From: Neoconidiobolus thromboides FSU 785
Taxonomy: Eukaryota > Fungi > Entomophthoromycota
Length of the DNA stretch: 64,000 bases
NCBI GenBank assembly: GCA_025603075.1
Contig: MU626282.1
Location: 62,001 to 126,000, forward strand
Direction: 5' to 3'
The notes under the pieces are model-generated. The model made no database searches. It saw only the letters and a program-made list of their open reading frames with translations, and was not told where the DNA came from. This document shows, piece by piece, positions 3,990 through 42,464 of this stretch (positions within the stretch are counted from its first letter, which is position 1; every line of letters starts with the position of its first letter). Position numbers and translations under genes: made by a program.

Positions 3990-5272
3990 TTATTGTATTT
4001 TATAGTACAAATTACAGTAATTAATTACATTTAAATCATAGTTAAATTTGTGCTCTTCGCATTATTTATTTTAAAGGTACGATGGGATATTTCTGTCTAA
4101 GATGTGGAATCTTTTCAAGGTACGGGTACCTTGGGCAGAATATCACCAAGCCTAATTATTTATTTTTTGTCTAATAAACTCTTTAATTAATCTATTATTC
4201 CTTAATCTTTTATAACCATAATTTTAAAATAATACTTTTTTTATAATATTACAGTCTTCACATAAAAAACTTGTATATTGCAAAATCATTATTTAAGTAT
4301 CTGAAACAAGATCGAAGAACATGAAAGCCTATTTACAAATTTAATACAACAAATAATTTATTTCGATTTAGTTATTTGTTAAAAGGTTTTAATTAAGCTA
4401 AAACAATATATTTATTCAAACTTGATATCAAATATATACAAATAAACATTAATTAGTTTACAAAATTCTTAATTAAACCTCACTTTAATCAACTATAACA
4501 TTTTCAGAAAAGTAATATTAATTTTTTTTAATATTATAACAATAGACATATTATTTAATAAGGTTTATCTTATTTTTAAGAAAAATAAGACAATTTAGTA
4601 TAAAGAATTAATCCACCGATTTAAATATATTAAGACTTATTTAAAATAACTCAAAATCTAATTAACTATGTAATATGTATTCTTATAGTTTCAATAATAA
4701 ATCTATTAAATAATATGAGATAATTATTAGAAAATGATAGTTTTTAATTAAATTTTAATTAATTAATTTCAATTTTTATATAAAGTAATTTTAGTTGAAA
4801 TAATATACTATTTATGGTTAATAAGATATTACTTTCATTGAACGTTGATAAAGTATATTGTAAATATACAAAGTATATAAATTAAGTTGATAAAGATTAA
4901 ATTGATGTGCTTTGATTATAACTTGGTAAGTAAAGTGATTAACTACACTTAATATAGAAAGTGATTGGGTAAAATCTCTTTCATAAAATGAGTCTTAAAG
5001 TAACCAAGCATAAACTGTACCCTATTATACCATGATCTAAGAGCGAAATCCAACATGATTGGATTATCTAAATATGGAAAAAACAGTGGAGCTTTCGATT
5101 AATACCAGTTCTAACAATTTCTACAAGAGGTTTAAACTGATGTGGATTGTATTTTATTAAACATAACAAATCTTTTGCTTTATTTAACTAGTGAAATTAT
5201 AGAATTTTATTTATTATAATCTCATCACTTTAATAACTTTTTACTATTTTTTGCTTATAAATTAATTTGCCA

Positions 5273-8911: not shown

Positions 8912-9848
8912 ATGTTATTTAATCGAAGGTATATTATTTAAGATAGTTCTTAAAAATGAGAGTACTCAATTTCGCTGCTTAAAAATCATTTCTGATTTTC
9001 TGTTCATATAATTTAAAATACTACTAGAATTAGTATTTTTAGTAGTATCTTCTAGTAATTTTTCAAAATAGCTTTGTAATATATTAAATTTCTCAGCATT
9101 TTAGATGCTACAAACACATATAAGTAATCCCAAACCATCATCTGAATTTTAACCTGTTACACTCTTTTGTTTAGAATAACATAAATAAATATTGACAGAT
9201 TTAGTTAACTTGTGTGAAATCTGGTACTCAGTGATTGGATTCAAAAACAGCTATTGCCTGGTTGACTATACTATAATTCGAAAGGTCTAAGTTTATGTGA
9301 CTAAGATAGACTTGGGTTATGAAGAATAGCATGTAATAGGCTACGGACTATGTAAGACAAATAGAATAGACAATACTAACATAAAACCTACGTAAAATAT
9401 TATTAAGAAAACTTAGTGGCTTTATTAAATGTTCGAGATATCAGGGAATAATTCAGTTAAAAGCCTTGAACTATTATACCCTGTAAACTCTTTTATACTC
9501 TGAAAAATATAAATATCAAAATGGGAAGATAATATTCTTTGGGATGGAGCTAGAAATTCTCATAGCAAATCAAACTAAGAACGTGGAACTGATTTTCTCC
9601 GAACTCGAGAACACAACAGCTTAGGCGATTGTTATGCTATAATTAACTATGGAACTGACAAAGCGACATTTCACACTTGACACAAAGTGACCCTTCTGGG
9701 CCTTTTCAACCTAAATGGATCAATTTAAAAAGTACCCATCAATAAAATAAATGTTTACCCATACCTTAGCTTATAGAAGCATGGTTTGTGACTTCTAATT
9801 TAAAATTTTGGCCTTTCTATTAAATAAGTAGAAATATGATGGGAACAT

Positions 9849-9945
9849 GGGGGTGTTTTTTTGATTTTATTATTTTTTCATTTTCTAAACGCTATTTGAG
9901 TAGAAAGATTGTTAGTAAAATTATTAAACACAAAAACAAAGCTCC
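9849..9945 (+). mobile_element. MITE family copy 4
   Basis: AT|GGGGGTGTTTTTTTG...CTATTTGAGTAGAAAGATTGTTAGTAAAATT...GCTCC|AT. Confidence 0.85.
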
Positions 9946-10158
9946 ATATGATAGTTTTAGAATAATTTTACTATTTTAGTTATGCCTCAAAAGCTTTAAA
10001 TCAGTTGTTGCTTTTTAATGTTTATTTAATTAGGTTTACTTTTATAATTTTAATCTCTGCTCTTTCTTTCTGATTTCCTTTTATTGTATAGCACATTGTT
10101 AACAATTTTTGATGTTGATTTGATACTATATTATTCGGCACCTTAGTTATTAATATAT

Positions 10159-10257
10159 GGGAGTGTTTTTTTTAACTTCATTATTTTTTCCATTTTTTAA
10201 GCGCTATTTAAGCGGAAAATTTGTTAGTAAAATTCTTAAACACAAAAATACATCCCC
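10159..10257 (+). mobile_element. MITE family copy 5
   Basis: AT|GGGAGTGTTTTTTTT...AAAAATACATCCCC|AT. Confidence 0.9.
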
Positions 10258-11003
10258 ATATAATTCTTTTTAATTACATGCTATTTAGATAAAGAAAATT
10301 GATTTTAAAATAAAAATAATGAAATACAAAATAGTTTATTAAAATCATAAGCAAACTATGAATCATCAATTTTAATAAAAGAATCTATAAACAAAGGAAG
10401 TTGTAAAAGTGGCTAATAAAATTTTTTTAAAGTGTAATAATAGTAAATTAGTAACAGTGTAGTTCTATTGAATAAAAACAAAAACTAAACACTTGTTTTA
10501 TAAATTTAAATCTAGATAAAAAGCAAATATAAGTTACCTCCAGTTATTTACTAAATATTTGATTTGTTAAGCATAGCACAAGCTATCAAGATGTATTAAA
10601 AGTTATTGATATCTTAAATAATAACGTATATTTAATAATTGTTATAAATGAAGCTTTATTTTTGTTAAATGATAGTTCAATTATCTTAGTTGATGTTAAT
10701 ATTATTTTGAAGAACTGCTATCACTGAAAATCTAGTTTTTGTATCAAATTACAAAGCAAATATCCCAAAAGCGTTATTTATTTATTTCTATTTATTGATT
10801 TATAGCCAAAGGTATCGGAAAATTAAAGCTACTATTCATTATAACAATGATATTTTTTAGGAGTTCTCTATTCTATGATTTTAAATATTTGCTTTCGAAC
10901 TTTAACGTTATATCGTGTCAAGATGTAAGTTGACACCTATAAAATCAATTATGTTATTTCAAACAGAGTAACAGTTAATTCAATGCTTTATTAATTTATA
11001 TAT

Positions 11004-11095
11004 AAAGATGTCTTTTTGGTTTCATTACTTTTTCCATTTTTTAAACACTATTTAAGTGGAAAACTATTAGCAAAATTCTTAAAAAACACATCTTC
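11004..11095 (+). mobile_element. MITE family copy 6 (degenerate ends)
   Basis: AAAGATGTCTTTTTGGTTTCATTACTTTTTCCATTTTTTAAACACTATTTAAGTGGAAAA...ACACATCTTC|AT. Confidence 0.8.
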
Positions 11096-11463
11096 ATATC
11101 CAAAAGATCTTTATTCCTTTCATCTGTTTACTTTAAAATACTACTGTTATTTATTATTAGTGTTTGAACATATGTAAATAATTGAACTCAATTCTTTAGA
11201 ATAACAAACAATTGAAATTCTGATTTTACCCAACTGACTCAATATTATATTAGCATAAAGTAAATTAGTAACTTTGATAGATTATTTTAAATTATATGCT
11301 CCAGCTTTTAAAAATAATGATAATAATTATGAAAACTTAATGCCAATTAAATTGAATTTCGCTATGATTTATATAAACTATAAGATCAAAAATTTTGTTT
11401 TATCAAATTTAGCTGTAGTTAAATAAACATTATAGTAAAAGTAACCTAAAGTATTTAATATAT

Positions 11464-11563
11464 GAGAATGTTTTTTTTTGACTTCATTGTTTTTTCCATT
11501 TTTTAGGCGCTATTTGAGCGGAAAATTTGTTAGTAAAATTCTTAAACACAAAAATACATCCCC
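11464..11563 (+). mobile_element. MITE family copy 7
   Basis: AT|GAGAATGTTTTTTTTTG...AAAAATACATCCCC|AT. Confidence 0.9.
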
Positions 11564-14500
11564 ATATGGTTAATCGGAGAAATAAAGCTCAAAGTTAAAA
11601 AAATCAACTAAGAGGTTAATAAAATATAGATCGAAATGTTCACCATTAATGTTTACAGTAATTGCAAGTAGCTTGAAAAAGAGGTAAATGTTATTAGAAT
11701 TATAGTAGTGTATCAAAAAAGTAAAGCTCAAGTAGGTTTGATTAGAGTTACTCAAAGGTATATTGGAAGTAATCAAGAAACTACATAATTGATAGCTGTA
11801 TTTTTATAAAAGACCATTGTTGGTAGCAGATATCAATTAAATGAATGAAACAAAGAGGTAACCCTGTGATTGGATGACGTGGCGCCACTAATAAGCTTAT
11901 TTCTGCAATTTAACAGCCAAAAAAGACAAAATCAACCTAAGTACTCTTATATCATTCAAGAGAATGAATAGTTGGGCAAACATCAAAAGCTTTTTTATTT
12001 ATGGAGACCTGAAGCAAAATCTAAAGAGTCAGAAAAAATATTAAATTTTATAATAGTATAAGTAGATAACTACTAAAGTCCTGACTGTTAAATATCGGAT
12101 GGTTTCAATTATTTAAATAAATAATTCAAACATATTTAGAATACATTCTCATATACACTAAAGAAATAGTTGACACAATTTAGCTGCCTCTTTCCTTGAA
12201 GTATGTAGATAATAGAGTCTACTTGGTATACATGGATTAAACTAGTAAGTGTGTATCCTCAAGGCAGGGGCACTTCATAATTTCACTGAACATGGTTATT
12301 AGAACAGAAATAGAAATAAGTAAACTAGAGAAAAACTACAAAATCTACACACTTTCAATCGTACTATTTTTTAAGTTTTTTATTACTTTGTAAAGTTTGA
12401 TTTAAGCAATCCCACTAAAACATATCTTTGATAAAAGTAGGGTTAAAGTCAATCAATAAAAACTTTTAAGTGTGACTTTGTAACTTTTATTTATAAAATA
12501 GAAAGTATCATAAATAATTATAAATATCGTTAACAAAAACAGTAGAAAAGAATATAAAAAGATAGATGACTTGCACCAAAATAGCAATATATCCAAGGAG
12601 ATAGAAATATTGATTAGTAATCAATATTAAATAATAACATTTTAAAGTACTTAAAATGATCTAATTATCATAAATACTTTACTTTTAAAGTTATACTCCT
12701 ATATACCGTCATCATCCTTTTATTATTTAAAATTATAAAAAGTATAAAATAAATTATAAATGAAATGGTAGTACAATAACTAATTCTTTTTTGTACCATA
12801 GGCATTTTAATTCAAAATTAGAATTATGTAAGCATTAATGTAATAGCAATCAATAAACAATAAATGTTTGGAATCAATAAAAACGGAATTAGATATAACA
12901 ATTTAGTTATCAATACATTTAAATAGTCTGTTTAACATAGTTAAACAATATAACTTATCAAAGTTATTATATTTTTTTGAAAACAACTGAACTATAAACG
13001 TTTTAGGAAAAAATATAAATAATATCTATATGAACGTTGATTAAAAATTAAAAAATATCCGAGAATCAACCTAAACATTTTTGAATGGCCATGGCAATTA
13101 CTGTTTTGTAACGTTCTTACTCCTCAATTTCTATAACAATTTTGTAGTACTTGAAGTTTTATTAAGATGTAAGCTTATGCTGCTTTTTTTGATATAAATG
13201 ATTATGGTTTCTTGAGTTACGTTTTAGTACCCCTAATTTGTTGAACATTAATTACTCCATTAAATTAAGTTTGAAGTTATAATTACTATTCAAAACAATG
13301 ATAATTTCATTATCAATAGCTTTTATAATAGAAGCTTTGTATTTTGATGAAACTGGTATTTAATGAAATGTTTTATTAATGGGTTTTTTCTTATCAATAA
13401 ATGAATTGATAAAACTATTAAGGTTGATAGTATAAATAGTTATTAACTAAACATGAAAATCATAATTGTAAAGCAATAAATTTGATACAAGTACAATGTC
13501 ATCTGTTTGTGAAATTGCTATACTTTTAGTGTTTATTTTAACCTTGGTGTTATAGAAAGTTAAAGAATTTGTGTTTTGTTTTGAATATGTTATGGAATTG
13601 AGAAGAGAACAACTATAAATAGCCTATTAACTTGTATCAATATACTTCGGCAGCTACTCATTTACTTGACTTATTTATAAACCGTGTTACTTCTAATATT
13701 GGTATTTAATCTAGATATTAAAACTAGTTTCAAAATCCCACAGAGTACTAAGCTTTGCTATTATCCCGATTTTTGTTACTAAAAGTTGAGTATCCCTGTT
13801 GAATAAGTGAGTTGATAAAATCCAACAGGCTATTGATCATCAGATATTACAATTAAAAACAATAATAGTAAAATTTAACAATATCTGAAAACAATCATAA
13901 TAAAATGGAATGCTAAAATTTCAAAGTTATTAAATTCAAAATTTTACTATGATTTTTAATTGAAAAGCCAAATATCTACACTATTATTGTTTTCATTACA
14001 AAGCTAAATAGCTAACATGATGAAATATATTTAGATCCTTTAGTGTAATTTAAGGTACCAGAAATAAAGTTTATAGTTATTAAAGCAACAGTGAGATCAT
14101 AGGATCACATATCAAAGCCTTTGAGCTGTTATATTCAGATTGTCTGTAAACAAACTCAAATAAGCAATGAACTGTTAAAAATACTTTAGTAGTATTTGAA
14201 AAATAAAAGTTGGAAAATTAAAATAGTATGCCAACTGGTATTATATTTCTACAGAAGTATATTGGCCAATATCAATTTGTCTAATAAAAAAACTATATAA
14301 AGTTGAGACATTATGTTAACCCTATTTCTTTAAGTTATTTTATCAAATTATTGAGTGAAACGCTTACTAATTTCAAGTGAATAGGGATTTTTAAAGTTAT
14401 TGATATCAAAAAATAGCCAATATATTGCATCATTATCCCTTATAACTCATAGTTCTCCCAATAATCATTCCCTATAAAAAATAATAACAAAATCTAGTTA

Positions 14501-14799: not shown

Positions 14800-17352
14800 A
14801 TGGACTCCCTTCAAGCCAAATTTGAATCCATTGGGTTATCTGAAACGAAAGCCAAAGATACTTTAAAAAACAAGAAGCTTGCCCCTTTATTAGATAAAGT
14901 GATCGACTTGGCTTCCCTTTCTCCCGAAACTTTAAGTGAAAAAAAACATATAGGTAACAACTTGTATAACTTAGCTACTACAATTACTCCAGACGCTACC
15001 AATCGATTGGAATTTTTGGTATCTAAAGTAGCTAATGAGGACTTAAGAACTTCAGAACAAATTTCAGCTGCTATTAAATATTGTGATAAATTATTAGTTG
15101 AAGAAGAGATTGATATTAATAAGTTTAATGAAACTTGTGGGGTTGGTAAGTTATTCTTTATTATATTATAGTTTTCATTTATTTACGTATTCCTCTAGGT
15201 GTTGTTGTTACCAAAGAACAAATAGAGCAAATAGTAACCAGAGTTATTGAAGAAAATAAGGAAAAGTTGACAACTGAGCGTTATCGCTTTGTATTTCCTT
15301 TGCTTGCTATTTTACGTCAAGATTTTGTTTTAAAATGGGCTAATGGTGGGGATGTAAAAACTGAACTGGACAAACAAGCTTTAGCTTTACTTGGTCCTAA
15401 AGACGAAAGAGATGTTATTGTTAAAACTAAGGTAAGATATAACCATCCATTGTAAAGTAGTAGTTGATATATTATTTGTATAGGGAAAAGCTAAAGGAGG
15501 AGAAGGTAAAAAAGAAGCCAAAAAAGCCGAAACTAGTAAAATAGAAGAAAATAAAGATTCTAAAGTTATCGAAAAAGATCCTTCTCTCGCTTCTTTATCC
15601 ATGTTTTATGAAGGTGAATTATCACGTTTACATAAGCCTGGAGGTAATAAACAAATCAAAGCCTCTATTATGGAAGAACATCTTAAGCGTACCAAGGGTA
15701 AAGTAATTACTCGATTCCCACCAGAACCAAATGGATTCCTTCATATTGGACATGCTAAAGCTATTAATGTTAATTTTGGTTATGCTCAAGCTCATGATGG
15801 TATCTGCTATTTGAGATATGATGATACTAATCCAGAAGCAGAAGAAGAAATTTACTTTACTTCAATTTTAAAAGCAGTTGAATGGCTTGGGTTTAAACCA
15901 TTCAAAGTAACTTATTCTTCCGATTATTTTGACCAACTTTACGAATTAGCAGTTAAATTAATTAAAGTTGGTAAAGCTTATATTTGTCATTGTACTGGAG
16001 AAGAAATCCATAAACATCGTGGCGGAGATGAAAAAGGACCTAGGAGTGAGTGCATTCATCGTAGTCGACCAATTGAAGAATCTTTAAAAGAATTTGATAA
16101 TATGAAGTTAGGTAAATATAAAGAAGGAGAAGCTATTTTAAGAATGAAAATGGATATGCAGAGTGGCAATCCCCAATTTTGGGATTTAGTAGCTTATCGT
16201 GTATTATACACACCTCATCATCGTACTAAAGATAAATGGTGTGTTTATCCAACTTATGATTTTACCCATTGTTTAGTTGATTCTTTTGAGGATATTACCC
16301 ATTCTTTGTGTACTTTAGAATTTGTACAATCTAGACCTTCATACTATTGGCTATGTGATAGCTTAGAAGTTTATAAACCTGTACAATGGGAATATGGTAG
16401 ATTAAACGTATCTAGTACTATTTTATCAAAGAGAAAGATATTAAAATTAATTACTGAAAAATATGTCAATGGTTGGGATGATCCTAGGTTATATACTTTA
16501 CCTTCTTTGAGAAGAAGAGGTGTACCACCAGCTGCTATTAACACTTTTGTTAGAGATGTTGGTGTTACTACCTCAACTACTACAATTGATGTTAAACGTT
16601 TGGATAATTATATTCGTGATCATTTAAATGAAACAGCACCAAGAATCATGGCTATTTTGGATCCAATTAAAGTAGTTATTGAAAATTTACCAGAAAATTA
16701 TTATGAAAGTATTACTGTACCAAATAAACCTAGGGATCCTAAAATGGGAGAACATCAAGTACCATTTACAAATACCTTTTATATTGACGCTAGTGATTTC
16801 AGAGTTGAAGATAGTAAAGATTATTTTAGGTTGGCACCAAATAAAACCGTAGGGTTATTATATGTTAATTGTCCGATTAGTTGCACATCTTATGAAGTAG
16901 ATGAAAAAACTAATAAAGTTACATTAATCAAATGCCGTTATGAAAATGAAGGACAAATTAAAAAACCAAAAACATATATTCAATGGGTAGCCCATGCACC
17001 AAAACATCAATCTCCAGTTTCGATTGAAGAATTAAGAATATACAATCCATTATTTTTACATGAAAATCCACAAGATAAGACTTTAGTACCAAATGGTTTC
17101 TTATCTGATGTTGATCCTAATTCATTAGAAATTAAAAAAGGCGCTATTGTTGAAACAGGTATCTTCCAAGCAATTGAAAATGTTTTGAAGGAAAAGAAAG
17201 AGAAAGATTGCCTTGAAGAAGTTCGTGCTCAATTTATTAGAGTTGGTTATTTCTGTTTAGATAAAGATAGTTTAATTCAGGATAAGATTGAAGATAGTAA
17301 ACTTATCTTCAATCGTATTGTTACACTTAAAGAAGATACTAAAAAAGATTAA
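14800..17352 (+). CDS. GLN4: Glutaminyl-tRNA synthetase, 3 exons
   Basis: Eukaryotic N-terminal extension (exons from 14800 and about 15199) joined to the catalytic exon with TRFPPEPNGFLHIGH (HIGH), RYDDTNP, LSKRK (KMSKS-like), and an anticodon-binding domain ending FNRIVTLKED. Confidence 0.96.
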
Positions 17353-17542
17353 ATAAGTATTTTTAACAAATTGAATGTTTTGCATTTTGTATTTACTTTT
17401 ACTTTTACTTTTACTTATTTTGAATTCTTAATACAAAATACTAAAATGATTATTTTTTATTGAAAAAAAATAATATAAAAATTAAATATGACTAAAATAC
17501 TAAAATTGTCTTCCAAAATTAGTAAATTGTTATTGAAATATT

Positions 17543-19204
17543 TCATTCCATTTCAGGAGTTGGAAAAGCAATTGATTGACCTTTCAATTCACCATCTGTA
17601 TAAAATAATAAAGGTCGAAAAGATGGCTCATGATTAAGTACACTATTATATTATTATATTATTATATTGCCATTTGTATCACTATATTAAATTACCTTGA
17701 ATTTTGAAAATGATTAATTAAAGCATGAATGCCTTGAATAGTAGCATAGGCTAAATCGCATCTTTTTTCAGATTTAAAATGTGGCCTAAACAAATATTAT
17801 AATTATTATTGTTGTTATAACTAGTTGTTTATTCAACTTACCACCGATTACCAACATAAATTTGAATAAATTTAATAATGGCTCTTTAAATAAAAAGATT
17901 AGTTTAGTAAAAATAGTATATATAATACACTTACTCCTTACTAATAAAATTAATAAATGCGTAGCCCACATTACACTTATTAATAAAATCCATACGAAGG
18001 TATAAAAAATTAAACTCTCCTAAATGCGTTTGGTTTAACACATCTAATAGCATGGACTAAAAACGTTATCGTTAATCTATTATAACAACGTATATAAACT
18101 GAATTATTACTTGTGTATATTTATTGGGGATGTTTTTAATCATAAAAGTAGTTCGCTGATCCAAATCTATTTACTTATAAACGTTATATACATAAACAAA
18201 AATTTCACTTACTTGATAAAACCTTTTCAGTGTCTTCTATTTTCCAGCTACCTTTCCATGAAGTACTTATACCATTTTGATTTCTTTGATTTTTATTATT
18301 TATTCTTGACATTGTGTTTTCAGAACTTGAAGAAGTAGCAGTTGATATTTGTCTATTATACTGAGATAATAGTCGATTTTTTTCGGCTCTTAATTTTATA
18401 GTCATATTAATATCTCCCATATTTTTATCATATTCATAAAAACAGGTAGCTGTTATGGACTATAGCCATTATTATTAAATAATAGAAACAAAATTTGGTT
18501 TAAATATAATACTTACCTTAAGTGTATTAAGCCAAGCTTTAACTCTATCACATACACGTACATCATAAAAATTAAGTAATAATATATGAATTTCATCATC
18601 TTTAATTGATTTATAATCCTTAAAGCCATCAATTATTTTTAAATGTCTCTAAGAAAAGACTCTCAATATATTCTTCTTTAATATTATAGTTATATCAATT
18701 GCTTACTTTAAACGCTTCCAACTCTACATTATCAAAATAATGTAAAATTACAATAGAATTATAAAACTTATGTAGTACACTATTATTGCACAAAATCAAT
18801 GGATCTTGATTGATTTGTTTAATTAACTACAAAAATACATCAACATCAATTAATAATACAAATAATAACAATGATAAACTTACATCTCGATAATATAAAT
18901 CATTATAGAAATTAATTGTATATAGTTTTGGATCTAATATTTCCATAATACTTTGCATAATACTATTAGAAAACCGTATATCGTAAATACTTACGAGTAC
19001 TGTTTGATGTATCATTAATACTTGTACATCCGAAAATTGAAACTTAAAGTTAGATGAGTAGTTATAAAACTTAGCAATAACAAAAAAGTTAGATACCTTT
19101 AACCTCTCATATAAAGGTGATAAAAGTGTATGATCTGGACTTGAAATCATTATATGATGAGTAGAAAGTTGTAATGAAAACGGTTGATAGATATTTAATG
19201 ACAT
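17543..19204 (-). CDS. mei2: Mei2-like RNA-binding protein (3 RRMs; RRM3 conserved, RRM1/2 divergent), about 8 exons
   Basis: Hand splicing links the small ORF fragments to DQRTTFMIKNIPNKYTQSMLL...FLYLRMDFINKCNVGYAFINF...WPHFKSEKRCDLAYATIQG..LINHFQNSS...FRPLLFY..G, the Mei2 RRM3 signature. YDIR and FYDVR motifs mark RRM1/2. Stop TGA at 17543-17545. Confidence 0.88.
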
Positions 19205-19747: not shown

Positions 19748-22389
19748 TCATTTCCTAAACGAAAGATCATCAATTAATTGAGTATTTCTAGCACAAGTGA
19801 TCAACATATCTTGCGCTAATATTGACATCTCTGGATTATTTGGCTAATGAAAAAAATCATTATTAAAAGCTATATAAAAAACTCTATAAAGATTCAACTT
19901 ACTGGTATTGTAACTTCCAAACAAGTAATTGAATAATTTAATTTGGCTGATACTGAAAGGGCTAATAAACCAGCTAATGATACTTTGGAGTTCAAAGAGA
20001 TATCTAAACGCGTCAAGCTTTTGGTTTCTGGTAACACTTCTGCTAATGCTATGGCCCCTATTATTTTATTAGAATGAAAAAATATTACCAATAAACAAAT
20101 GTTTTATAATTTATCATTACCTTCTGATGTCATACATGTATTTGATAAAAATAGGGATTTTAAACTATTGTTTTGTCCAAAGCAGGATTTGATGGACCAT
20201 AACTAATAAATAAATAAATTTGTTAGAGTATAATTATATAAACTAATAGCTTACTCCATCAATCGAAGGCCCACACATTGGATTTCCTGATAAATCTAAC
20301 GAATGTAACTTTCTATTTGTTTTCTATCAAAACAAAAAATTAGTATTATATTATTATAAATATTATGTTATTATAAATTACCAAAGCTTCAAAAAGACGG
20401 ACCATACCAAATTCATCAATTAAATTGCTACCAATTTTAAGTTCTTCTAATTGTGAATTTGGACTAGATAGCGGGGATAGTATACAATACAATCCTTCTG
20501 TCTATAAAAAATAATTTTCATATCAAAAATATTTCTCTTGATTTTCCTAATATTTACCTTCAATGAATTTTGACTTAAATCTAGAATCGACAATTTAGAC
20601 GATAGAAACATTTTATCTGGCTAAAAAAATAAAAATAATTAAAGAAATAAAAAAAATACAATATAAATTACATCTTCACTGCCACTCAATAACATTGAAA
20701 TATACTGAGCTCCTTGCGAGGTAATATTATTCCCACACAATGCAAGCGATCTTATATTTGATTTGATAATACCTTGGCCTAATAAATATTCATTAAATCA
20801 ATAACTTGCATCTCAAAGCGTTGTTTAGCTTACATAATATTTTTAACTCTTGCAATCTAATAGAACACTCATTTAATTTTAAATCCTCAAATGAGGACAT
20901 ATTTGTATCCTGTTCACCGTTAAACCTCGGAGATAATGGAGAAGTTAATGGAGATAAAGGAATTTGTGATTCATTTGTCGAATTATTACTTGAATCTAAA
21001 TGAATGATTCCACGTGCTAAAAACTTTGCGGATCGATATGTTATTGGTATACCAGATAAATCAAGTGATTTTAATTTTTTTGACTAAAAAATATAAATTA
21101 ATTAATATCACTGCTATGATTATTATTATGCTATTGTTATCACCTGACTTATGTAAGTAGCAATATATTTAACACCGTCAGATTTTATTTTTGGATTATT
21201 GGCTAAACTTAACATACAAATACGATCTTTTGTTAATAAATTACTCACCAGTACTTTGATACTCTAATAAAAATTGAATTCAATATTACTAATATAATTG
21301 CAAGTAGCCCAATATTTACCTCATCATCTAAGCTGCAATCTTCCAATTCTAATCTTGTTAGATTACTAAATAAATCTAATACATCTGATATTGGTAAAAT
21401 ACTTTTCAATGGGAAAGATTCACCTTAAATAATGGAACATATATAATCATAACTTAATATAATACAAATAAACCTTACCAGTCAATATGATACTTTCAAT
21501 ACATTGATTAGTACCAATAGCTTCCTAAAAAAACATAAAACATAAATAGCATTCTATTAAAAAACTACGATAACTTACCTCCAATATCTGAAGAAATCTC
21601 CCGTTAGGATGTTCTTCTCTTGAATTACAAATAGATAAATACCACTCCAAAATATCTTTACAACTAAATTTCGCCCCCTCTCCTTTTCCTTTTAACCAAG
21701 GGCCTTCCAACCCCATATATTGTTCATAACGATTATCTTCGCTTGGCATTAATTTAATAGAGGAAGGAATAATATAAGAAGTGGACCTTAAAGGTACAGA
21801 AAATCGAACTCTTTTTAATTTATTGGGATTTAATTCCGATGTTTTCCCTTCTTCTTCTTCATAGTATGAATTTTTGCTAAATGATAGGAATCGATTCAAT
21901 AACCGTGTACTTTGTTGTTTAAATACTAAACTGGAACGTCGGGCATAACTACTAGGTGGTAAAGAAGGTTTTAATATCCCTTTTGTCGGTTTTTTATGGG
22001 GTTCTTTTGAGTAAAAAAGGCTTAGTATTATATCATGTTTTTATGTATGTTTATTATCAGTTACCTGTTACTTCTATTTCTAAGTCCTTAATATTTTTAC
22101 TATCTTTAACGTTTTGTTCTTTCAACTGCTTTACATCCACCATACCTTCTGGCTCTTCGGTTAAAATGAAGCTATTGTCTGCTTTTAATATTGGCTTATT
22201 TTCATCCCCGTTAATATTCCCATTAGTTAAATTATTATTACTTATTGGTGTTTCCAATATTCTAAGTTTGGTCAATTCGTCTACTAAGTCTAAATGATCA
22301 AATTCGTCTAAACTAAATCGAGTGGGATCAAAACGTAAGCGTTTGTTCATTTCACCTATTAATCCCTTAACGGGGTCTTCGTTCTCCAT
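19748..22389 (-). CDS. RNI-like leucine-rich-repeat protein with PP1-binding RVxF motif (PPP1R37/Gip3-like), multi-exon
   Basis: KRVRF motif, then Y..IC..REEHP, then many short exons encoding LxxLxLxxN repeats (LTRLDISLN, LSLAGLLALSVS..LNYSITCL). The 3' end is less certain. Confidence 0.7.
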
Positions 22390-22489
22390 TGTTTATAAAT
22401 AAAAGCGATAATTTTTAAAATTGAAGTTAACTTTTTTGATTTTAAGTTATATTTAGCTATATTTTTTTTTACTGTGAGGTTCTACAGGC

Positions 22490-22790
22490 ACTAAAATCAA
22501 TGCTAGGTGTTTTAAATTAAAGCGTCAATTTTTTTTAAATTTTCGCTAAATAATTGATGTTTTGAACTTAATATTATTTGCACTAAGCTTTAAAAATCAA
22601 AAATACTTCTGGCGATAAATTCTTAAGACTTTAACGCAGTTTATAATAACTTTGTGAATTATACTTTTGTTCAAACACAGAGGATCTTTGAGAAATCTTA
22701 AAGATAATTTTGCCCATGAAATTTTTAAGAAAACTTGACGATTCAGTTTACATAAAAGATCTAGCACTGGCTTTTAGCAATTATATGACT
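22490..22790 (+). repeat. Left arm of ~300-bp inverted repeat flanking the NADPH oxidase gene
   Basis: e.g. ATTTTCGCTAAATAATTGATGTTTTGAACTTAATATTATTTGCACTAAGCTTTAAAAATCA aligns to the reverse complement of 25200-25262; boundaries approximate. Confidence 0.85.
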
Positions 22791-23097
22791 CCAGTTAGGA
22801 ACTCAAACCTCTTGATGTTTAATAATATTTACCTATCATTGCTAAAGTTTTTATTTTACTAAGATAACTATTGATAAAAGTATCAGTGGTAATAATTAAA
22901 GTTATTATATTATATGCATATGCATTCAATGAGTTTAACATCATCGGTTATCAAATAATAGTATCCATAAGAAGCTTTTTTGATCATTATTATATTAATA
23001 TTTTGAAACCTTTGTAATGTATTATAGATTTAATACTCTAATATAAACTCAAAAACAACAACCGAGTTATTGTTATTTATTAAAATTAAAAAAGACT

Positions 23098-24814
23098 CTA
23101 AAAGTTTTCTTTGTTGTAATGGAACTTAGTACCTTCATTACCTGGCTGCGAATACTGATTGCAATACATATGAAGAGATTTAGACAAAGGTTTGGGTCCG
23201 CAGAAAAATACACCAATATCTGTAGATTTGTGTCTCTCCACTAACTTTTGGAAAATATTATTAAAGTTAGGTCTTCCAAACTGAGTTGGCGATCTTAATC
23301 CTGTTAAAGCATCCTCCTTACCCGCTTCATAATTAAGAGTAAGATTAAGAATCTCATCTGATTTTAATTTTCCTGTTAAAAAGGTGTTGATCTCGATTAT
23401 ATGGGAAGTATCCTCTTGTTCAATCACACTTAGCAGTGATTGAAACCATTCAAAAGCTTCTTTATCACGACAAGTCCATATGAAATATACCTTAGATAAT
23501 CTAGTTTGCTTACTTGGGGTATAAAGACGATACCAAATAGATCTAAGGATAGAAGCGAATGGATTTATACCAATACCTGCGCCAACCAACACAGATACTT
23601 CATAATTGAATACATCTTCCGATGCGCAACCAAAAGGCCCGTCAATCATAATTGAAGGTAAAGCTCTATCCAACAACTCATCGGTAGCAGCCTGTGGAGA
23701 TTTAGCATTTACATCACAGCCCAAACGTTCTGCAAGCGATTTAGTAAAATTGCCAGCCATTCTTATATGTATCGAAGCATAATCGTCTTCTGGAGCAGAG
23801 GTTAAAGTAAAAGGATGCCATTGATGTAGGGAAACTTCTGGGCAATTTAAAAAGATATATTGCCCTGCTTTCATTTTGAAATCCTTCTTTTTAAACTGAA
23901 TTTCTACTACTCTGGAAGGATGATGTACGACCCTAGATATAAAAGTCTCTCTAGACCCTCGCCATTCTCTCATAACTCTTTCATAAAGATATAAAACACC
24001 AGAAAATGTCCAATATTTCCAAAAGGAAGCACCTGCACAATAAGGTGGATGGTCTCTCCTAATTAAGCAAAAACCACCATGGAAACTATACATTAAAAAG
24101 TAGATAGCGAATAGATGATGTGTATACCAAAATAACTCAAAATTTTGTCGACGTACTTTACTAAGGGAAGTGGTACTTATTAAAATGAGACACAGCAACA
24201 TAATGCAACCTGACCATCCAGGTCCTGTTAGAAAAGTATAATGGACCCAACTTTTTCCGGTAATACCACCCACATCGAGGTTGGATAATTTATAAAAATT
24301 GATGAAATGAGCGATTGAATGAGTAATAGAATAAAAGATAACAGTCCAAGCAGTAAGTTTATGAAAAGTCCTATTTTTGTCAAAGGGGATGACATGGTTT
24401 AAAGGGGTAGATCTCAATAAGGAAATAGTAGTACGGCACATTGGTAGAAGGATTAAAGCGGTGTTGATTTCAATTGGTAATGAAGTTGCTCTAGCAACAA
24501 GAAAAGACTCTTGTAAAATATTTCGTACCATACTAAACTCACTGTTGTATTTGTAGTTTACGAAAGCAAACCCAAAGATTAAAATTTGACTGATACACCA
24601 GGTAACCATAAATACAAAGATTGAGGCTATAAATTATATATTATTAGGAGTTATGATGAAGATGCATAAATCGTTTACTTTCATTTTTAATATATCGTGA
24701 TATCTTAGCAACTAATGTTAGTTTACTGTAATCTAATGGAGTTGTCGGTGTCATATAGTTGGAGTTATTATCCAACGACTGGTACCCAGATTTACCTTTA
24801 GCAATTCTGTCCAT
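23098..24814 (-). CDS. noxA: NADPH oxidase, gp91phox/NoxA type (554 aa, 2 exons)
   Basis: Exon 24679-24814 (MDRIAKGK...KNE), intron 24627-24678, exon 23098-24626. Heme-ligand His pairs (FHKLTAW..H.IAH; FWYTHHLF..HG), FAD site QWHPFTLTS, NADPH sites DGPFG, VLVGAGIG, GVFFCGP, and a C-terminal KENF. Confidence 0.95.
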
Positions 24815-24999
24815 TTTATAGTATTTTATTTAACAGTATCAAACTAATTGTCAAGGACAAGGACAGTGGTAGTGAAAGTTGAAAGTCACTTTAAACAAAA
24901 ACAAATATAAAGATTTAAAAATTTTAAAAGATGGGCTTTTATATTCAAAATGTTGTAATTTACTAATGGCTCTTAATTTATTGACCTTAAACCACTCAT

Positions 25000-25310
25000 T
25001 AGTACAATTACTAAATATCAATGCTAAATGCTTTCCATAAATTCAATAGCTGAGTTTATTACAATTTTCTCTAAATAATTGTTTTTGAGATTTCTTAAGA
25101 TCTTTTGTATCTGAAAAGTACAATTTTAAAGTGCAATTGTATTTATTCTAAACTTAAACTGCGGTAAAGGCTTGTAAGGGTTTATTAAAAAATATGTTCT
25201 GGTTTTTAAAGTTTAGTGCAAATAATGTTAAGTTTCAAGACATCAATTATTTAACGAAAATCTAAAAAAAGCTACACTTTAATTTATGTAAAATATTCAG
25301 CATTGATCTT
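25000..25310 (-). repeat. Right arm of ~300-bp inverted repeat flanking the NADPH oxidase gene
   Basis: Reverse complement reads ATTTTCGTTAAATAATTGATGTCTTGAAACTTAACATTATTTGCACTAAACTTTAAAAACCA...CTTTACCGCAGTTTA...AAGATCTTAAGAAATCTCAAAAACAATT, collinear with the left arm. Confidence 0.85.
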
Positions 25311-25715
25311 TATTAACTATCTAAACATTAAGTGGAGGATAAATTTGGTAACTTAACGGCTATTAAATTTTGTCCATAAATTTTATCAAATCAGTAAGAT
25401 GAACGTGATATTTGAGTACTCTAGTAACACTTTAACACATTAATACATTATAAAGAAATTAGTTTTTATGTTTTGCTTTAATATGTTAAATCACCTATAA
25501 AATATAGTTAACAATTTAAAAATAATAATAAAGCGATTATATAAAATAAAACAAATTCTACTGTCTTTTTTATTATTTAGCAATACATAACTCATTACCA
25601 CTTTATCTTAAAATTGCGTCATTCATTTTTTTACATAGTATTTGTCATAAAAACAAATATAAAAACCATCCCATCTCAACCATATTAAACAATTTAACCT
25701 AAAAGTCAATAAATA

Positions 25716-26362
25716 ATGCATAATCTACTATCCTTGAGTCTAAGAAGATTGATGAAACCTTCAAGTTTATTTAAGCCGTTAATTGCTAACAATACTCCAG
25801 CATTGACTTCCATCACAAGACAATTCACTTTAACTTCCAGAGTTTTAGACACTAACAACTCAATAAAACCAGTGGATGTTACTCTTTCAGAGTTATTAAA
25901 GTTAATTCAAAGCGATTCAAAAAAAACTAAAGGTAGTTTTAACTAAATAAAACCATATTATAGAAATAACAAGTTGTTAGATTTTACTTTAATTGACGTA
26001 CGTGAAAAGCAAGAGCGTTTAGAAGGTGCTATACCAAATTCGAAATGGCTGCCCTTAGGCGAACTTGAAAGCGCCTTAAAATTAGACCCTCATGATTTTA
26101 AAGCAAAATATAAGTTTGAAAAATTTGAAACAGATAAACCAGTTATCTTCCACTGTAGATCTGGTGTTAGATCTGGTAAAGCACAAGATATCGCTATTCA
26201 ACTAGGATATAAAAAGTAAGTTTTATTAGTTGTTTTGAGGCTGTATTAGTGGTATTAACTTTATCCTTTTATTGTTATAGTGCTAGAAATTATAAAGGTA
26301 GTTGGTTAGAATTCTCAAAAGAAAAACCAGAGCTTGTCTGGATTGACCAAGACCTTAAATAA
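25716..26362 (+). CDS. Single-domain rhodanese/thiosulfate sulfurtransferase (Rdl1/Rdl2/TSTD-like) with mitochondrial-type presequence, 3 exons
   Basis: LIDVRE..E...G.IPNS, active-site loop FHCRSGVRS, and a last exon encoding NYKGSWLEF. Confidence 0.9.
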
Positions 26363-26476
26363 AGTAAAGCTTATATGTTATTATAGTAATTTTATGTCAT
26401 CCTATTTTAAAAAGGTTAATAAAAGTAAAAAATAATAATAATACTTTTTATAATAACATCTAATTTTATTTATGAT

Positions 26477-27475
26477 TTATTTAGTTTCATTTTCATTTTT
26501 AAAGATATCGGACAATAAAGCTTTATTATTAGCCTTTTTGTTGTCCTCAGTTTGATTTCTATTATTATTGTTGTTATTATCCTTCTTTCTCAAAAAACTA
26601 GCACTTGAATTGTTCTTGTTTCTAAAATTAAATTGATTATTCTTCACATCTGATCTTAATAAGGAGTCAAACACCTTATTGAAGTAAGTCATATTAATAG
26701 AGTTGCTGTTGTTGCTAGCTTCGCTTAAACTTTGATTACGATTGTGTTTAAATAAGTTTAATGTAACTCTAGGTGCTCCATCTTTATCAATATAAGCTTC
26801 TTGTACATAGAATTGACGTACTTCATGATTGAATGGATTAATCTCATTATCATCTCCTTTATTACCACTTTGCCAGTTACGACCAACGGATACTTTAGCC
26901 AAATAAGATACCACGCCGTTGACGCCCACGGCATGGGCTCCAAATTTAACTCTACCAAGTATTCTACCTTCCACAACTTTCTTTTCTCCACGAGTACTAC
27001 GGTACATTGGGGGAGCTTTTACGGCCAATTGATGAGTATCAAGTAAATTAAAAAACTCATTAATAGCCGATATTTGATTATCCAGTTTTCCATATCGATT
27101 CTTGAATTCTACTTGGCGCTCTTTGGCTTTAGCTAACAACTGTTGGAATTGTTCTTCACTCAACTCAGTTAAATCTATTTTTCTATCTGCCGAAAAACCT
27201 GTCCAATTCTTTTCACTTTGATTACCAAAGTTTTGATTCCATCTTTTGAGGAACAATACATCATGCAGAGCACTATCAAATGGTGTTTGACGTTCTGCGG
27301 TGTCAATTGCTTTTACTGTTATTACAGGTGAACGCCATGCTTTTGGTAAGTTTCTTTTTAATCCCCAATCACCGATCTTTTTGGCTGAACCATGGGTGGT
27401 ATACACTTGCTTGATGGTAGGATCGTAAGTGGCAAACTTAGATGCTCGAAATAATTGTGCAAATGATTTAGACAT
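26477..27475 (-). CDS. MRP51: Mitochondrial small-subunit ribosomal protein Mrp51 (bS1m)-like
   Basis: FAQLFRASKFATYDP..QVY......GDWGLKRNLP and IDT.E.QTPF match the Mrp51 family N-terminus; intronless 332 aa. Confidence 0.8.
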   Translation of the reverse strand: MSKSFAQLFRASKFATYDPTIKQVYTTHGSAKKIGDWGLKRNLPKAWRSPVITVKAIDTAERQTPFDSALHDVLFLKRWNQNFGNQSEKNWTGFSADRKIDLTELSEEQFQQLLAKAKERQVEFKNRYGKLDNQISAINEFFNLLDTHQLAVKAPPMYRSTRGEKKVVEGRILGRVKFGAHAVGVNGVVSYLAKVSVGRNWQSGNKGDDNEINPFNHEVRQFYVQEAYIDKDGAPRVTLNLFKHNRNQSLSEASNNSNSINMTYFNKVFDSLLRSDVKNNQFNFRNKNNSSASFLRKKDNNNNNNRNQTEDNKKANNKALLSDIFKNENETK

Positions 27476-42111: not shown

Positions 42112-42464
42112 ATTTGTTAAAAATTTTGCACTAAATAATCGAAATCAAGTTTGACAGATTTTCATTAAACTTTATAAGCAAGGATCACTTTTTTGATTAT
42201 GTAACTTTTAATATAATACCCTATTCTAAGTATTTAAACAAATTAACAGCTTTAATATATTTGATAAATGATAGTATTTTTTATTTGTATTAAACCAGAT
42301 TGAGTTTTCCTAAATTTAAATAGTCTTTTAAGCTTTTTTTAAATATATTGTATAACTAAAAACTAACTTTACATACATTTGATAATAACTAGCTTATTTA
42401 AATAACATAATTCAAACTTATGTACAGTTATATAGAGCTGTGCCATAATAAAAATAAAAATAAT

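Follow-up and report, generated by a model that had tools for sequence, protein, structure and literature searches.

How did an intact NADPH oxidase gene come to lie between two long inverted repeats in the genome of the insect-associated fungus Neoconidiobolus thromboides FSU 785? The locus falls within a 64,000-nucleotide stretch of contig MU626282.1 (assembly GCA_025603075.1, positions 62,001 to 126,000), hereafter the window, in whose coordinates positions are given unless marked otherwise. A preliminary description of this DNA had proposed that the two repeats and the noxA gene between them form a Pack-MULE-like or composite transposon cassette, with two unrelated insertions of one repeat as the fallback. 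We describe here a second noxA locus in the same assembly, and show that the homology between the two loci ends at the inner tips of the repeats. The explanation that we favour, to which we give a probability of roughly 0.55, is a transposon-associated capture (transduplication) of the whole noxA gene, with the copy in the window as the derived one.

Results

Homology between two noxA loci stops at the inverted repeats

The second noxA lies on contig MU626267.1 (L001, the prefix used for its coordinates) amid Myb, Mito_carr, PEPCK and PGK genes, which are unrelated to the neighbours of the window copy. The best protein match of the enclosed gene is an N. thromboides FSU 785 protein that is 95% identical over exon 2, the 90% protein cluster of this match has two members, and contigs for both nox copies stand at equal depth in the probable source run. 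The duplicated segment occupies 22784..25001 on the minus strand and is homologous to L001:9757-12028, with 82.5% identity over 2286 columns. Besides the complete nox gene with its intron, it takes in 187 bp of 5′ flank and about 314 bp of 3′ flank. When 22000-26000 was compared with L001 8800-12800 under sensitive settings, the pairing of 25001-22784 with 9757-12028 was the sole collinear similarity.

Alignments of the boundaries place the end of this homology 1–10 bp from the inner tip of each repeat arm. The most diverged paralogous stretch, which lies beside the left arm, gives a z-score of 19 against L001 in a shuffle test, versus shuffle level both for the outer flanks of the window locus against the corresponding L001 flanks (z −0.8, −0.7 and 1.6) and for the arms against the L001 flanks (z 1.0 and 0.1). 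The survey of nox paralogs and their flanks that the preliminary description had called for yields two close noxA copies, one of them enclosed; the L001 copy has no flanking inverted repeat, and its boundaries carry no insertion signature. Because both duplication breakpoints coincide with the inner arm tips, two unrelated insertions, which fail to explain this coincidence, are very unlikely, and the arms mark both ends of a gene duplication. Cargo that was captured between transposon ends would be expected to show breakpoints at arm tips in just this way.

The two junctions share a short motif. At the left one, where duplicated DNA begins 1–7 bp from the arm tip, the sequence CAATTA (22778..22783, plus strand) abuts the inner tip of the arm and possibly also opens the duplicated segment itself. 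At the right one, a 9-bp filler, GTACAATTA (25002..25010, plus strand), separates the end of paralog homology from the inner tip, and contains a second CAATTA in direct orientation at 25005-25010. An identical 6-mer abutting both inner tips has a P of about 0.002. The pair could be a 6-bp target duplication formed when nox entered a head-to-head pair of elements, or it could be templated filler left by end-joining or gap repair, with 20–30% divergence accumulated since.

At the other locus, L001:12049-12065, 20 bp beyond the end of the homology, matches the arm terminus (CTAAAATCAATGCTAG) at 13 of 17 positions and is oriented like the outer tip of the left arm. By chance, about 0.06 matches of this quality would be expected in the sequence scanned; the 17-mer could be what is left of a deleted arm, or it could be fortuitous.

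Each arm is a palindromic unit with its own termini

The left arm extends over 22491..22777 (287 bp, plus strand) and the right arm, an inverted copy of the same unit, over 25011..25311 (301 bp, minus strand). These refined limits come from a repeat search, blastn, DNA folding and MAFFT alignment, with inspection of the tips. They fit the earlier account of collinear inverted repeats of about 300 bp and about 70% identity: with permissive scoring, blastn finds 22493-22785 collinear with and 70% identical to the reverse-complemented 25003-25310 (314 columns, E 5.5e-38), and in the MAFFT alignment the 281 aligned bases are 72% identical, the differences being 48 transitions and 30 transversions. 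In a repeat search of 21500-26500 the inverted pairs, among them 22530-22566/25234-25270 at 92% and 22565-22602/25197-25234 at 89%, are likewise collinear and join roughly 22493-22709 with roughly 25077-25310. The transition:transversion ratio is 1.6 between the arms and 2–2.6 in the paralogous non-coding DNA, values that are unremarkable as regards a bias of the kind left by repeat-induced point mutation. No Rfam family matched 22300-25500 at E values up to 1.

Both arms are imperfect palindromes, matching their own reverse complements in blastn with E values of 2.5e-11 (left) and 3.2e-21 (right), and as single-stranded DNA each folds into one long hairpin (−33.1 kcal/mol, z −2.1 on the left; −36.6 kcal/mol, z −3.7 on the right). 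The right arm has its own 60-nt terminal inverted repeats (TIRs), 25008-25067 and 25257-25316, which are 73% complementary. Three of the four arm tips start CTAAA(A/T)ATCAATGC, namely the outer tip of the left arm (CTAAAATCAATGCTAGG), its inner tip read as the reverse complement (CTAAAAGCCAGTGCTAG) and the inner tip of the right arm (CTAAATATCAATGCTAA); in the fourth, the outer tip of the right arm (AAAGATCAATGCTGAAT), the core ATCAATGC is shifted one base out of register. Since the arms are self-palindromic and share these tips, each looks from its sequence like a complete palindromic miniature inverted-repeat transposable element (MITE) or foldback unit, and each is, as a MITE should be, a short non-coding element with terminal inverted repeats (internal TIRs of up to 60 nt). 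The dinucleotide TA adjoins all four tips, which may point to a MITE of the Tc1/mariner type if the TA is not just part of the TIR.

The arms are unrelated to the 97-bp Sola2-type MITE of the N. thromboides genome, as first described; inspection and nhmmer ruled out kinship between the two. Copies of that MITE lie near the putative donor nox, at L001:3885-3974, 8988-9107, 17324-17470, 17773-17918 and 18212-18366, three of them clustered within 1 kb. Weak blastn matches of the arm at 4334-4507, 10284-10388 and 42114-42197 were rejected as AT-rich chance similarity. Searches for a target-site duplication (TSD) around each single arm gave nothing convincing, and no Mutator-related TIR or autonomous Mutator partner could be linked to the arms.

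The surroundings are compact. A gene resembling PPP1R37, a leucine-rich repeat (LRR) protein, has its ATG (22389, minus strand) 101 bp from the outer tip of the left arm, and this arm lies about 320 bp past the nox stop codon. The right arm is upstream of nox, about 200 bp from its ATG, and is separated by 404 bp from the ATG of a rhodanese gene (25716). Taking out 22491-25311 would leave the LRR/PPP1R37-like and rhodanese genes divergent and about 505 bp apart, a gap that is a plausible empty site. The outer 100 bp or so of each arm (22491-22600 and 25200-25311), which face these neighbours, are more alike than the paralogous non-coding DNA (71–80%).

The enclosed gene encodes a NoxA with an altered NADPH-binding motif

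That exactly one intact noxA lies between the arms holds good, and there is no other gene, nor any transposase, in this interval. The gene, of the NoxA/gp91phox type, occupies 23098..24814 on the minus strand according to the gene model and Pfam, and encodes 555 amino acids in an intact frame: exon 1 spans 24814-24679, a 52-nt GT..AG intron 24678-24627 and exon 2 24626-23098. Its product contains Ferric_reduct, FAD_binding_8 and NAD_binding_6 domains (Pfam E 3e-17, 5e-22 and 1e-31, respectively). In these three domains, in the paired heme-binding histidines of two transmembrane helices and in its HPFT flavin adenine dinucleotide (FAD) motif it resembles fungal NoxA, and it is 79–80% identical to a protein of Entomophthora muscae. 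It differs from fungal NoxA in the glycine-rich NADPH-binding motif, where the predicted residues Ile-Asn, encoded by codons 399-400 (23563..23568, minus strand), replace the invariant Val-Thr of GIGVTPF. In an alignment of 121 sequences the enclosed copy thus reads GIGINPF against GIGVTPF in the paralog, and among the 119 homologues the threonine is present in 119/119 and the valine in 99%. Departures from columns conserved at ≥80% in this alignment occur in the window copy only and not in the L001 copy.

The enclosed gene is probably transcribed, since 93% of its sampled 31-mers were found in an RNA-labelled run from the same organism (the RNA label being a guess) and, at 88% identity between the paralogs, 31-mers are mostly specific to one of them. 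Public annotation begins both paralogs at the second ATG (24754 in the window), which gives proteins of 534 amino acids. An upstream in-frame ATG (24814 in the window) and 20 further codons are conserved in both copies (24754-24814; L001:9941-10001), and as these are kept in frame in both, the two proteins are probably of 555 rather than 534 amino acids.

Age and direction of the duplication

The paralogs are 80% identical in the 5′ flank, 80% in the intron and 75% in the 3′ flank (71% in its distal part). In the coding sequence identity rises to 88% for nucleotides and 92.6% for amino acids, with a ratio of non-synonymous to synonymous substitutions (dN/dS) of 0.05 and a synonymous divergence (dS) of 0.5–0.68. 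On these figures the event is old, and both nox copies have been kept by purifying selection. Jukes-Cantor distances are 0.24–0.37 for the paralogous non-coding DNA and 0.35 between the arms; as the latter value falls within the former range, the arms started to diverge when, or nearly when, nox was duplicated.

In the protein tree the two N. thromboides nox genes are sisters (support 100/100); the branch of the window copy measures 0.064, about five times that of the L001 copy (0.013). With E. muscae as the outgroup, 13 amino-acid changes are unique to the window copy and 4 to the L001 copy (chi2 4.8); with P0004 as the outgroup, the counts are 12 and 1. On these sequence comparisons the window nox looks like the derived copy, because relocated daughter copies usually evolve faster and depart from invariant motifs, as this one does, and because a break between the arms accounts for both junctions at once.

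Synteny was also consulted, at the nox loci of E. muscae (L002), Massospora cicadina (L006), Conidiobolus coronatus (L007), Basidiobolus ranarum (L008) and a relative known from a metagenome (L004/L005). Six-frame tblastn detected none of the neighbour genes of either N. thromboides locus at these outgroup loci, where only nox itself matched. A search for an empty site by way of Mrp51 orthologues found its nearest match in E. muscae, at 46% identity, and no close relative with a compact genome. In the metagenome relative, whose Nox is 71% identical, the gene downstream of nox (L004:6738-7826) has an HTH_48 domain among its Pfam hits, a domain typical of mariner-type transposases. The NoxB-like locus of C. 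coronatus has a separate 228-amino-acid gene with only a Ferric_reduct domain 6 kb upstream (L007:3366-4100, 10001-11703).

Two runs labelled as other organisms, X2 and X4, contain the window haplotype with 0 differences and a second haplotype across 21600-26400, which suggests heterozygous, heterokaryotic or mixed isolates.

Discussion

We suggest that the canonical noxA locus on MU626267.1 was duplicated at the DNA level, with promoter and intron retained, and that the copy was set between two inverted, palindromic MITE/foldback-like elements of about 290–300 bp. The event would have begun with a double-strand break between two head-to-head copies of the element, or inside one long-TIR or foldback element. 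Repair of this break would then have drawn about 2.2 kb of copied sequence from the noxA locus and left short microhomology or filler where the pieces join. In a variant of this scheme the arm-nox-arm structure could have moved as one composite unit. The repair mechanism is an inference, and the transposon nature of the arms would follow from their anatomy.

Several observations weigh against this explanation. With nhmmer --max no further arm copy was found in the window, as first described, or in 21.6 kb of MU626267.1 (86 kb in total), and none at ≥80% in the contigs of four DNA runs, where contigs show presence and not absence; it is by anatomy that the arms are called transposons, because no other copy was found. 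Once the outer ends had been fixed, the 8–10-bp TSD that the preliminary description had proposed to look for did not appear around the cassette: apart from an ambiguous TA there is no TSD, and direct repeats within the 15-bp outer flanks reach 4 bp at most, in a 4-mer set back from the ends. The identity between the arms is uneven in the MAFFT alignment, at 80–92% in the outer 100 bp or so and 60–69% in the inner part (about 86% versus about 64%), which is unexpected under a simple single-event history; gene conversion could be the cause, or else selection may act on the outer ends, which are turned towards the promoters of the neighbours. Among the reads of the four DNA runs, at 80% likeness, no joint bypasses either an arm or the whole cassette, and the arms attract no additional contigs; neither an empty site nor a presence/absence polymorphism was seen. 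The second haplotype in X2/X4, which is 6–16% divergent and repeats the contrast within the arms (6% versus 16% divergence), has the left arm in place, with one contig bridging 22393-22981, and divergent X2/X4 contigs over 24954-25366 suggest that the right arm is present on it too. Finally, evolutionary rates are what the direction of the duplication has to be read from, because the outgroup loci share neither set of neighbours.

This last point bears on the reverse scheme, in which the window locus is ancestral, two palindromic MITEs came to lie beside its nox, and the DNA between them was later copied to MU626267.1 by templated repair synthesis or as a fragment freed at hairpin-induced breaks, the MITE hairpins setting the ends of the tract. 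The coincidence of breakpoints and arm tips holds equally here, the arms do form hairpins, outgroup synteny does not decide the matter, and a former transfer of arm sequence to L001 could be hinted at by the 13/17 terminus match that lies 20 bp beyond the homology. It would however require both ends of the tract to fall exactly at the tips of two separate MITEs, two junctions that a single break between the arms would account for together; it is in the window copy that fast evolution and the change in an invariant motif are seen, as in relocated daughters; and the L001 boundaries lack an insertion signature. We regard the reverse direction as unlikely, though well short of negligible. Capture into the window locus also fares better than the proposal that the arms are not transposons at all, and are instead a locus-unique inverted duplication, a by-product of the rearrangement that inserted nox through fold-back or palindrome-forming break repair. 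The lack of any other copy in anything searched, the lack of a TSD and an arm divergence close to that of the paralogous non-coding DNA all fit such an origin. Against it, each arm has its own TIRs and the four termini are similar, three of them with CTAAA(A/T)ATCAATGC, so that two rounds of inverted duplication or a pre-existing palindromic element would be needed, and the inner halves exceed the paralogous DNA in divergence, which suggests that the arms already differed before the event. We consider this origin distinctly improbable.

Two MITEs could instead have inserted independently beside an old duplicate, with the breakpoints produced by gene conversion limited to the stretch between them, or by coincidence. 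Inverted repeats and gene conversion are both common. This account nevertheless demands two insertions of the same family as well as the conversion, and any conversion must be ancient, as the inner non-coding DNA is 20–29% diverged. There is no residual similarity outside the arms, although the next genes leave no more than 101 bp and 404 bp there for comparison, and it is very unlikely that both ends should agree to within 10 bp by coincidence. It is the least probable of the explanations considered here, and by our reckoning very improbable indeed.

If the nox gene was captured, to what kind of element does the cassette correspond? Like the Pack-MULEs and Pack-type DNA transposons of plants, it has inverted arms of a few hundred base pairs (287 and 301 bp, within the range of about 100–500 bp for long TIRs at both ends) with no transposase between them, its internal DNA is a copy of a host locus still present elsewhere, and its site is the 5′ region between two genes. 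Unlike them, it has no flanking TSD of 9–11 bp, no Mutator-related TIR or autonomous partner in the DNA searched, and only a single copy; its cargo is a complete, intron-containing and selected gene with its promoter rather than a fragment, and each arm is fully palindromic. The proposed cassette gains support as regards a host gene carried as cargo between transposon-like ends, given that the paralog matches only the DNA between the arms. The Mutator-derived Pack-MULE label is unsupported, because there is no TSD of 9–10 bp and no link to a Mutator element, and because the arms are complete palindromic units with their own termini, not simple TIRs.

In composite or macro-transposons two elements mobilise the DNA between them, as in the Foldback-flanked transposing elements of Drosophila and the Ac/Ds macrotransposons of maize. 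Two complete, hairpin-forming inverted elements bracket host DNA here in the same manner. The present case differs in that the donor locus is without elements and has just the 17-mer with its 13/17 match nearby; neither a TSD around the composite nor a composite or its elements at the donor site were found.

In transduplication, a copy of a gene is taken up between the termini of a transposon and is then amplified (PMC6710886). In fungi it has been described for histone H3 in hAT elements of the Dothideomycetes Pyrenophora tritici-repentis and Mycosphaerellaceae (PMC3538342; PMC6710886). Those elements have hAT domains, TIRs of 18–20 bp, TSDs of 8 bp and tens or hundreds of copies, and the cargo in P. 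fijiensis is a retrocopy. Some transduplicated copies are reported to be putatively functional (PMC6710886). The N. thromboides cassette shares the acquisition between transposon-like termini, and amplification is absent, with two close nox copies of which one is enclosed. It differs from the histone H3 case in having no transposase, no TSD, one copy and a retained intron, and in its host, a member of the Zoopagomycota. The cassette works like a Pack-type or transduplicated element and represents a known kind of event, a gene duplication bounded by transposon ends. What is unusual here is that the cargo gene is complete, under selection and altered in a cofactor motif, and that the host belongs to the Zoopagomycota.

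Host genes captured between transposon ends are well known from plants and a few ascomycetes, mostly as fragments or as copies that soon decay. In this case a whole gene, with its intron and promoter, has apparently been captured in a little-studied fungal phylum and kept under strong purifying selection. If confirmed, the locus would offer dated junctions for studying how captures happen, and a natural pair of Nox enzymes for probing what the GIGVTPF motif tolerates. In other fungi, Nox enzymes govern how hyphae differentiate and how infection structures form, so the duplication may matter for the biology of an insect pathogen.

A bolder scheme can be outlined, although taken as a whole it is quite unlikely. 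The MITE/foldback-like ends would have captured and relocated a complete nox, whose paralog would have been kept over about 0.5 synonymous substitutions per site while the NADPH motif was remodelled, yielding an enzyme shifted in its function of generating reactive oxygen species; the outer 100 bp or so of the arms would meanwhile have been kept as regulatory or protein-binding sites. If true, this would be the transposon-mediated birth of a functionally shifted enzyme of this kind in an early-diverging fungus.

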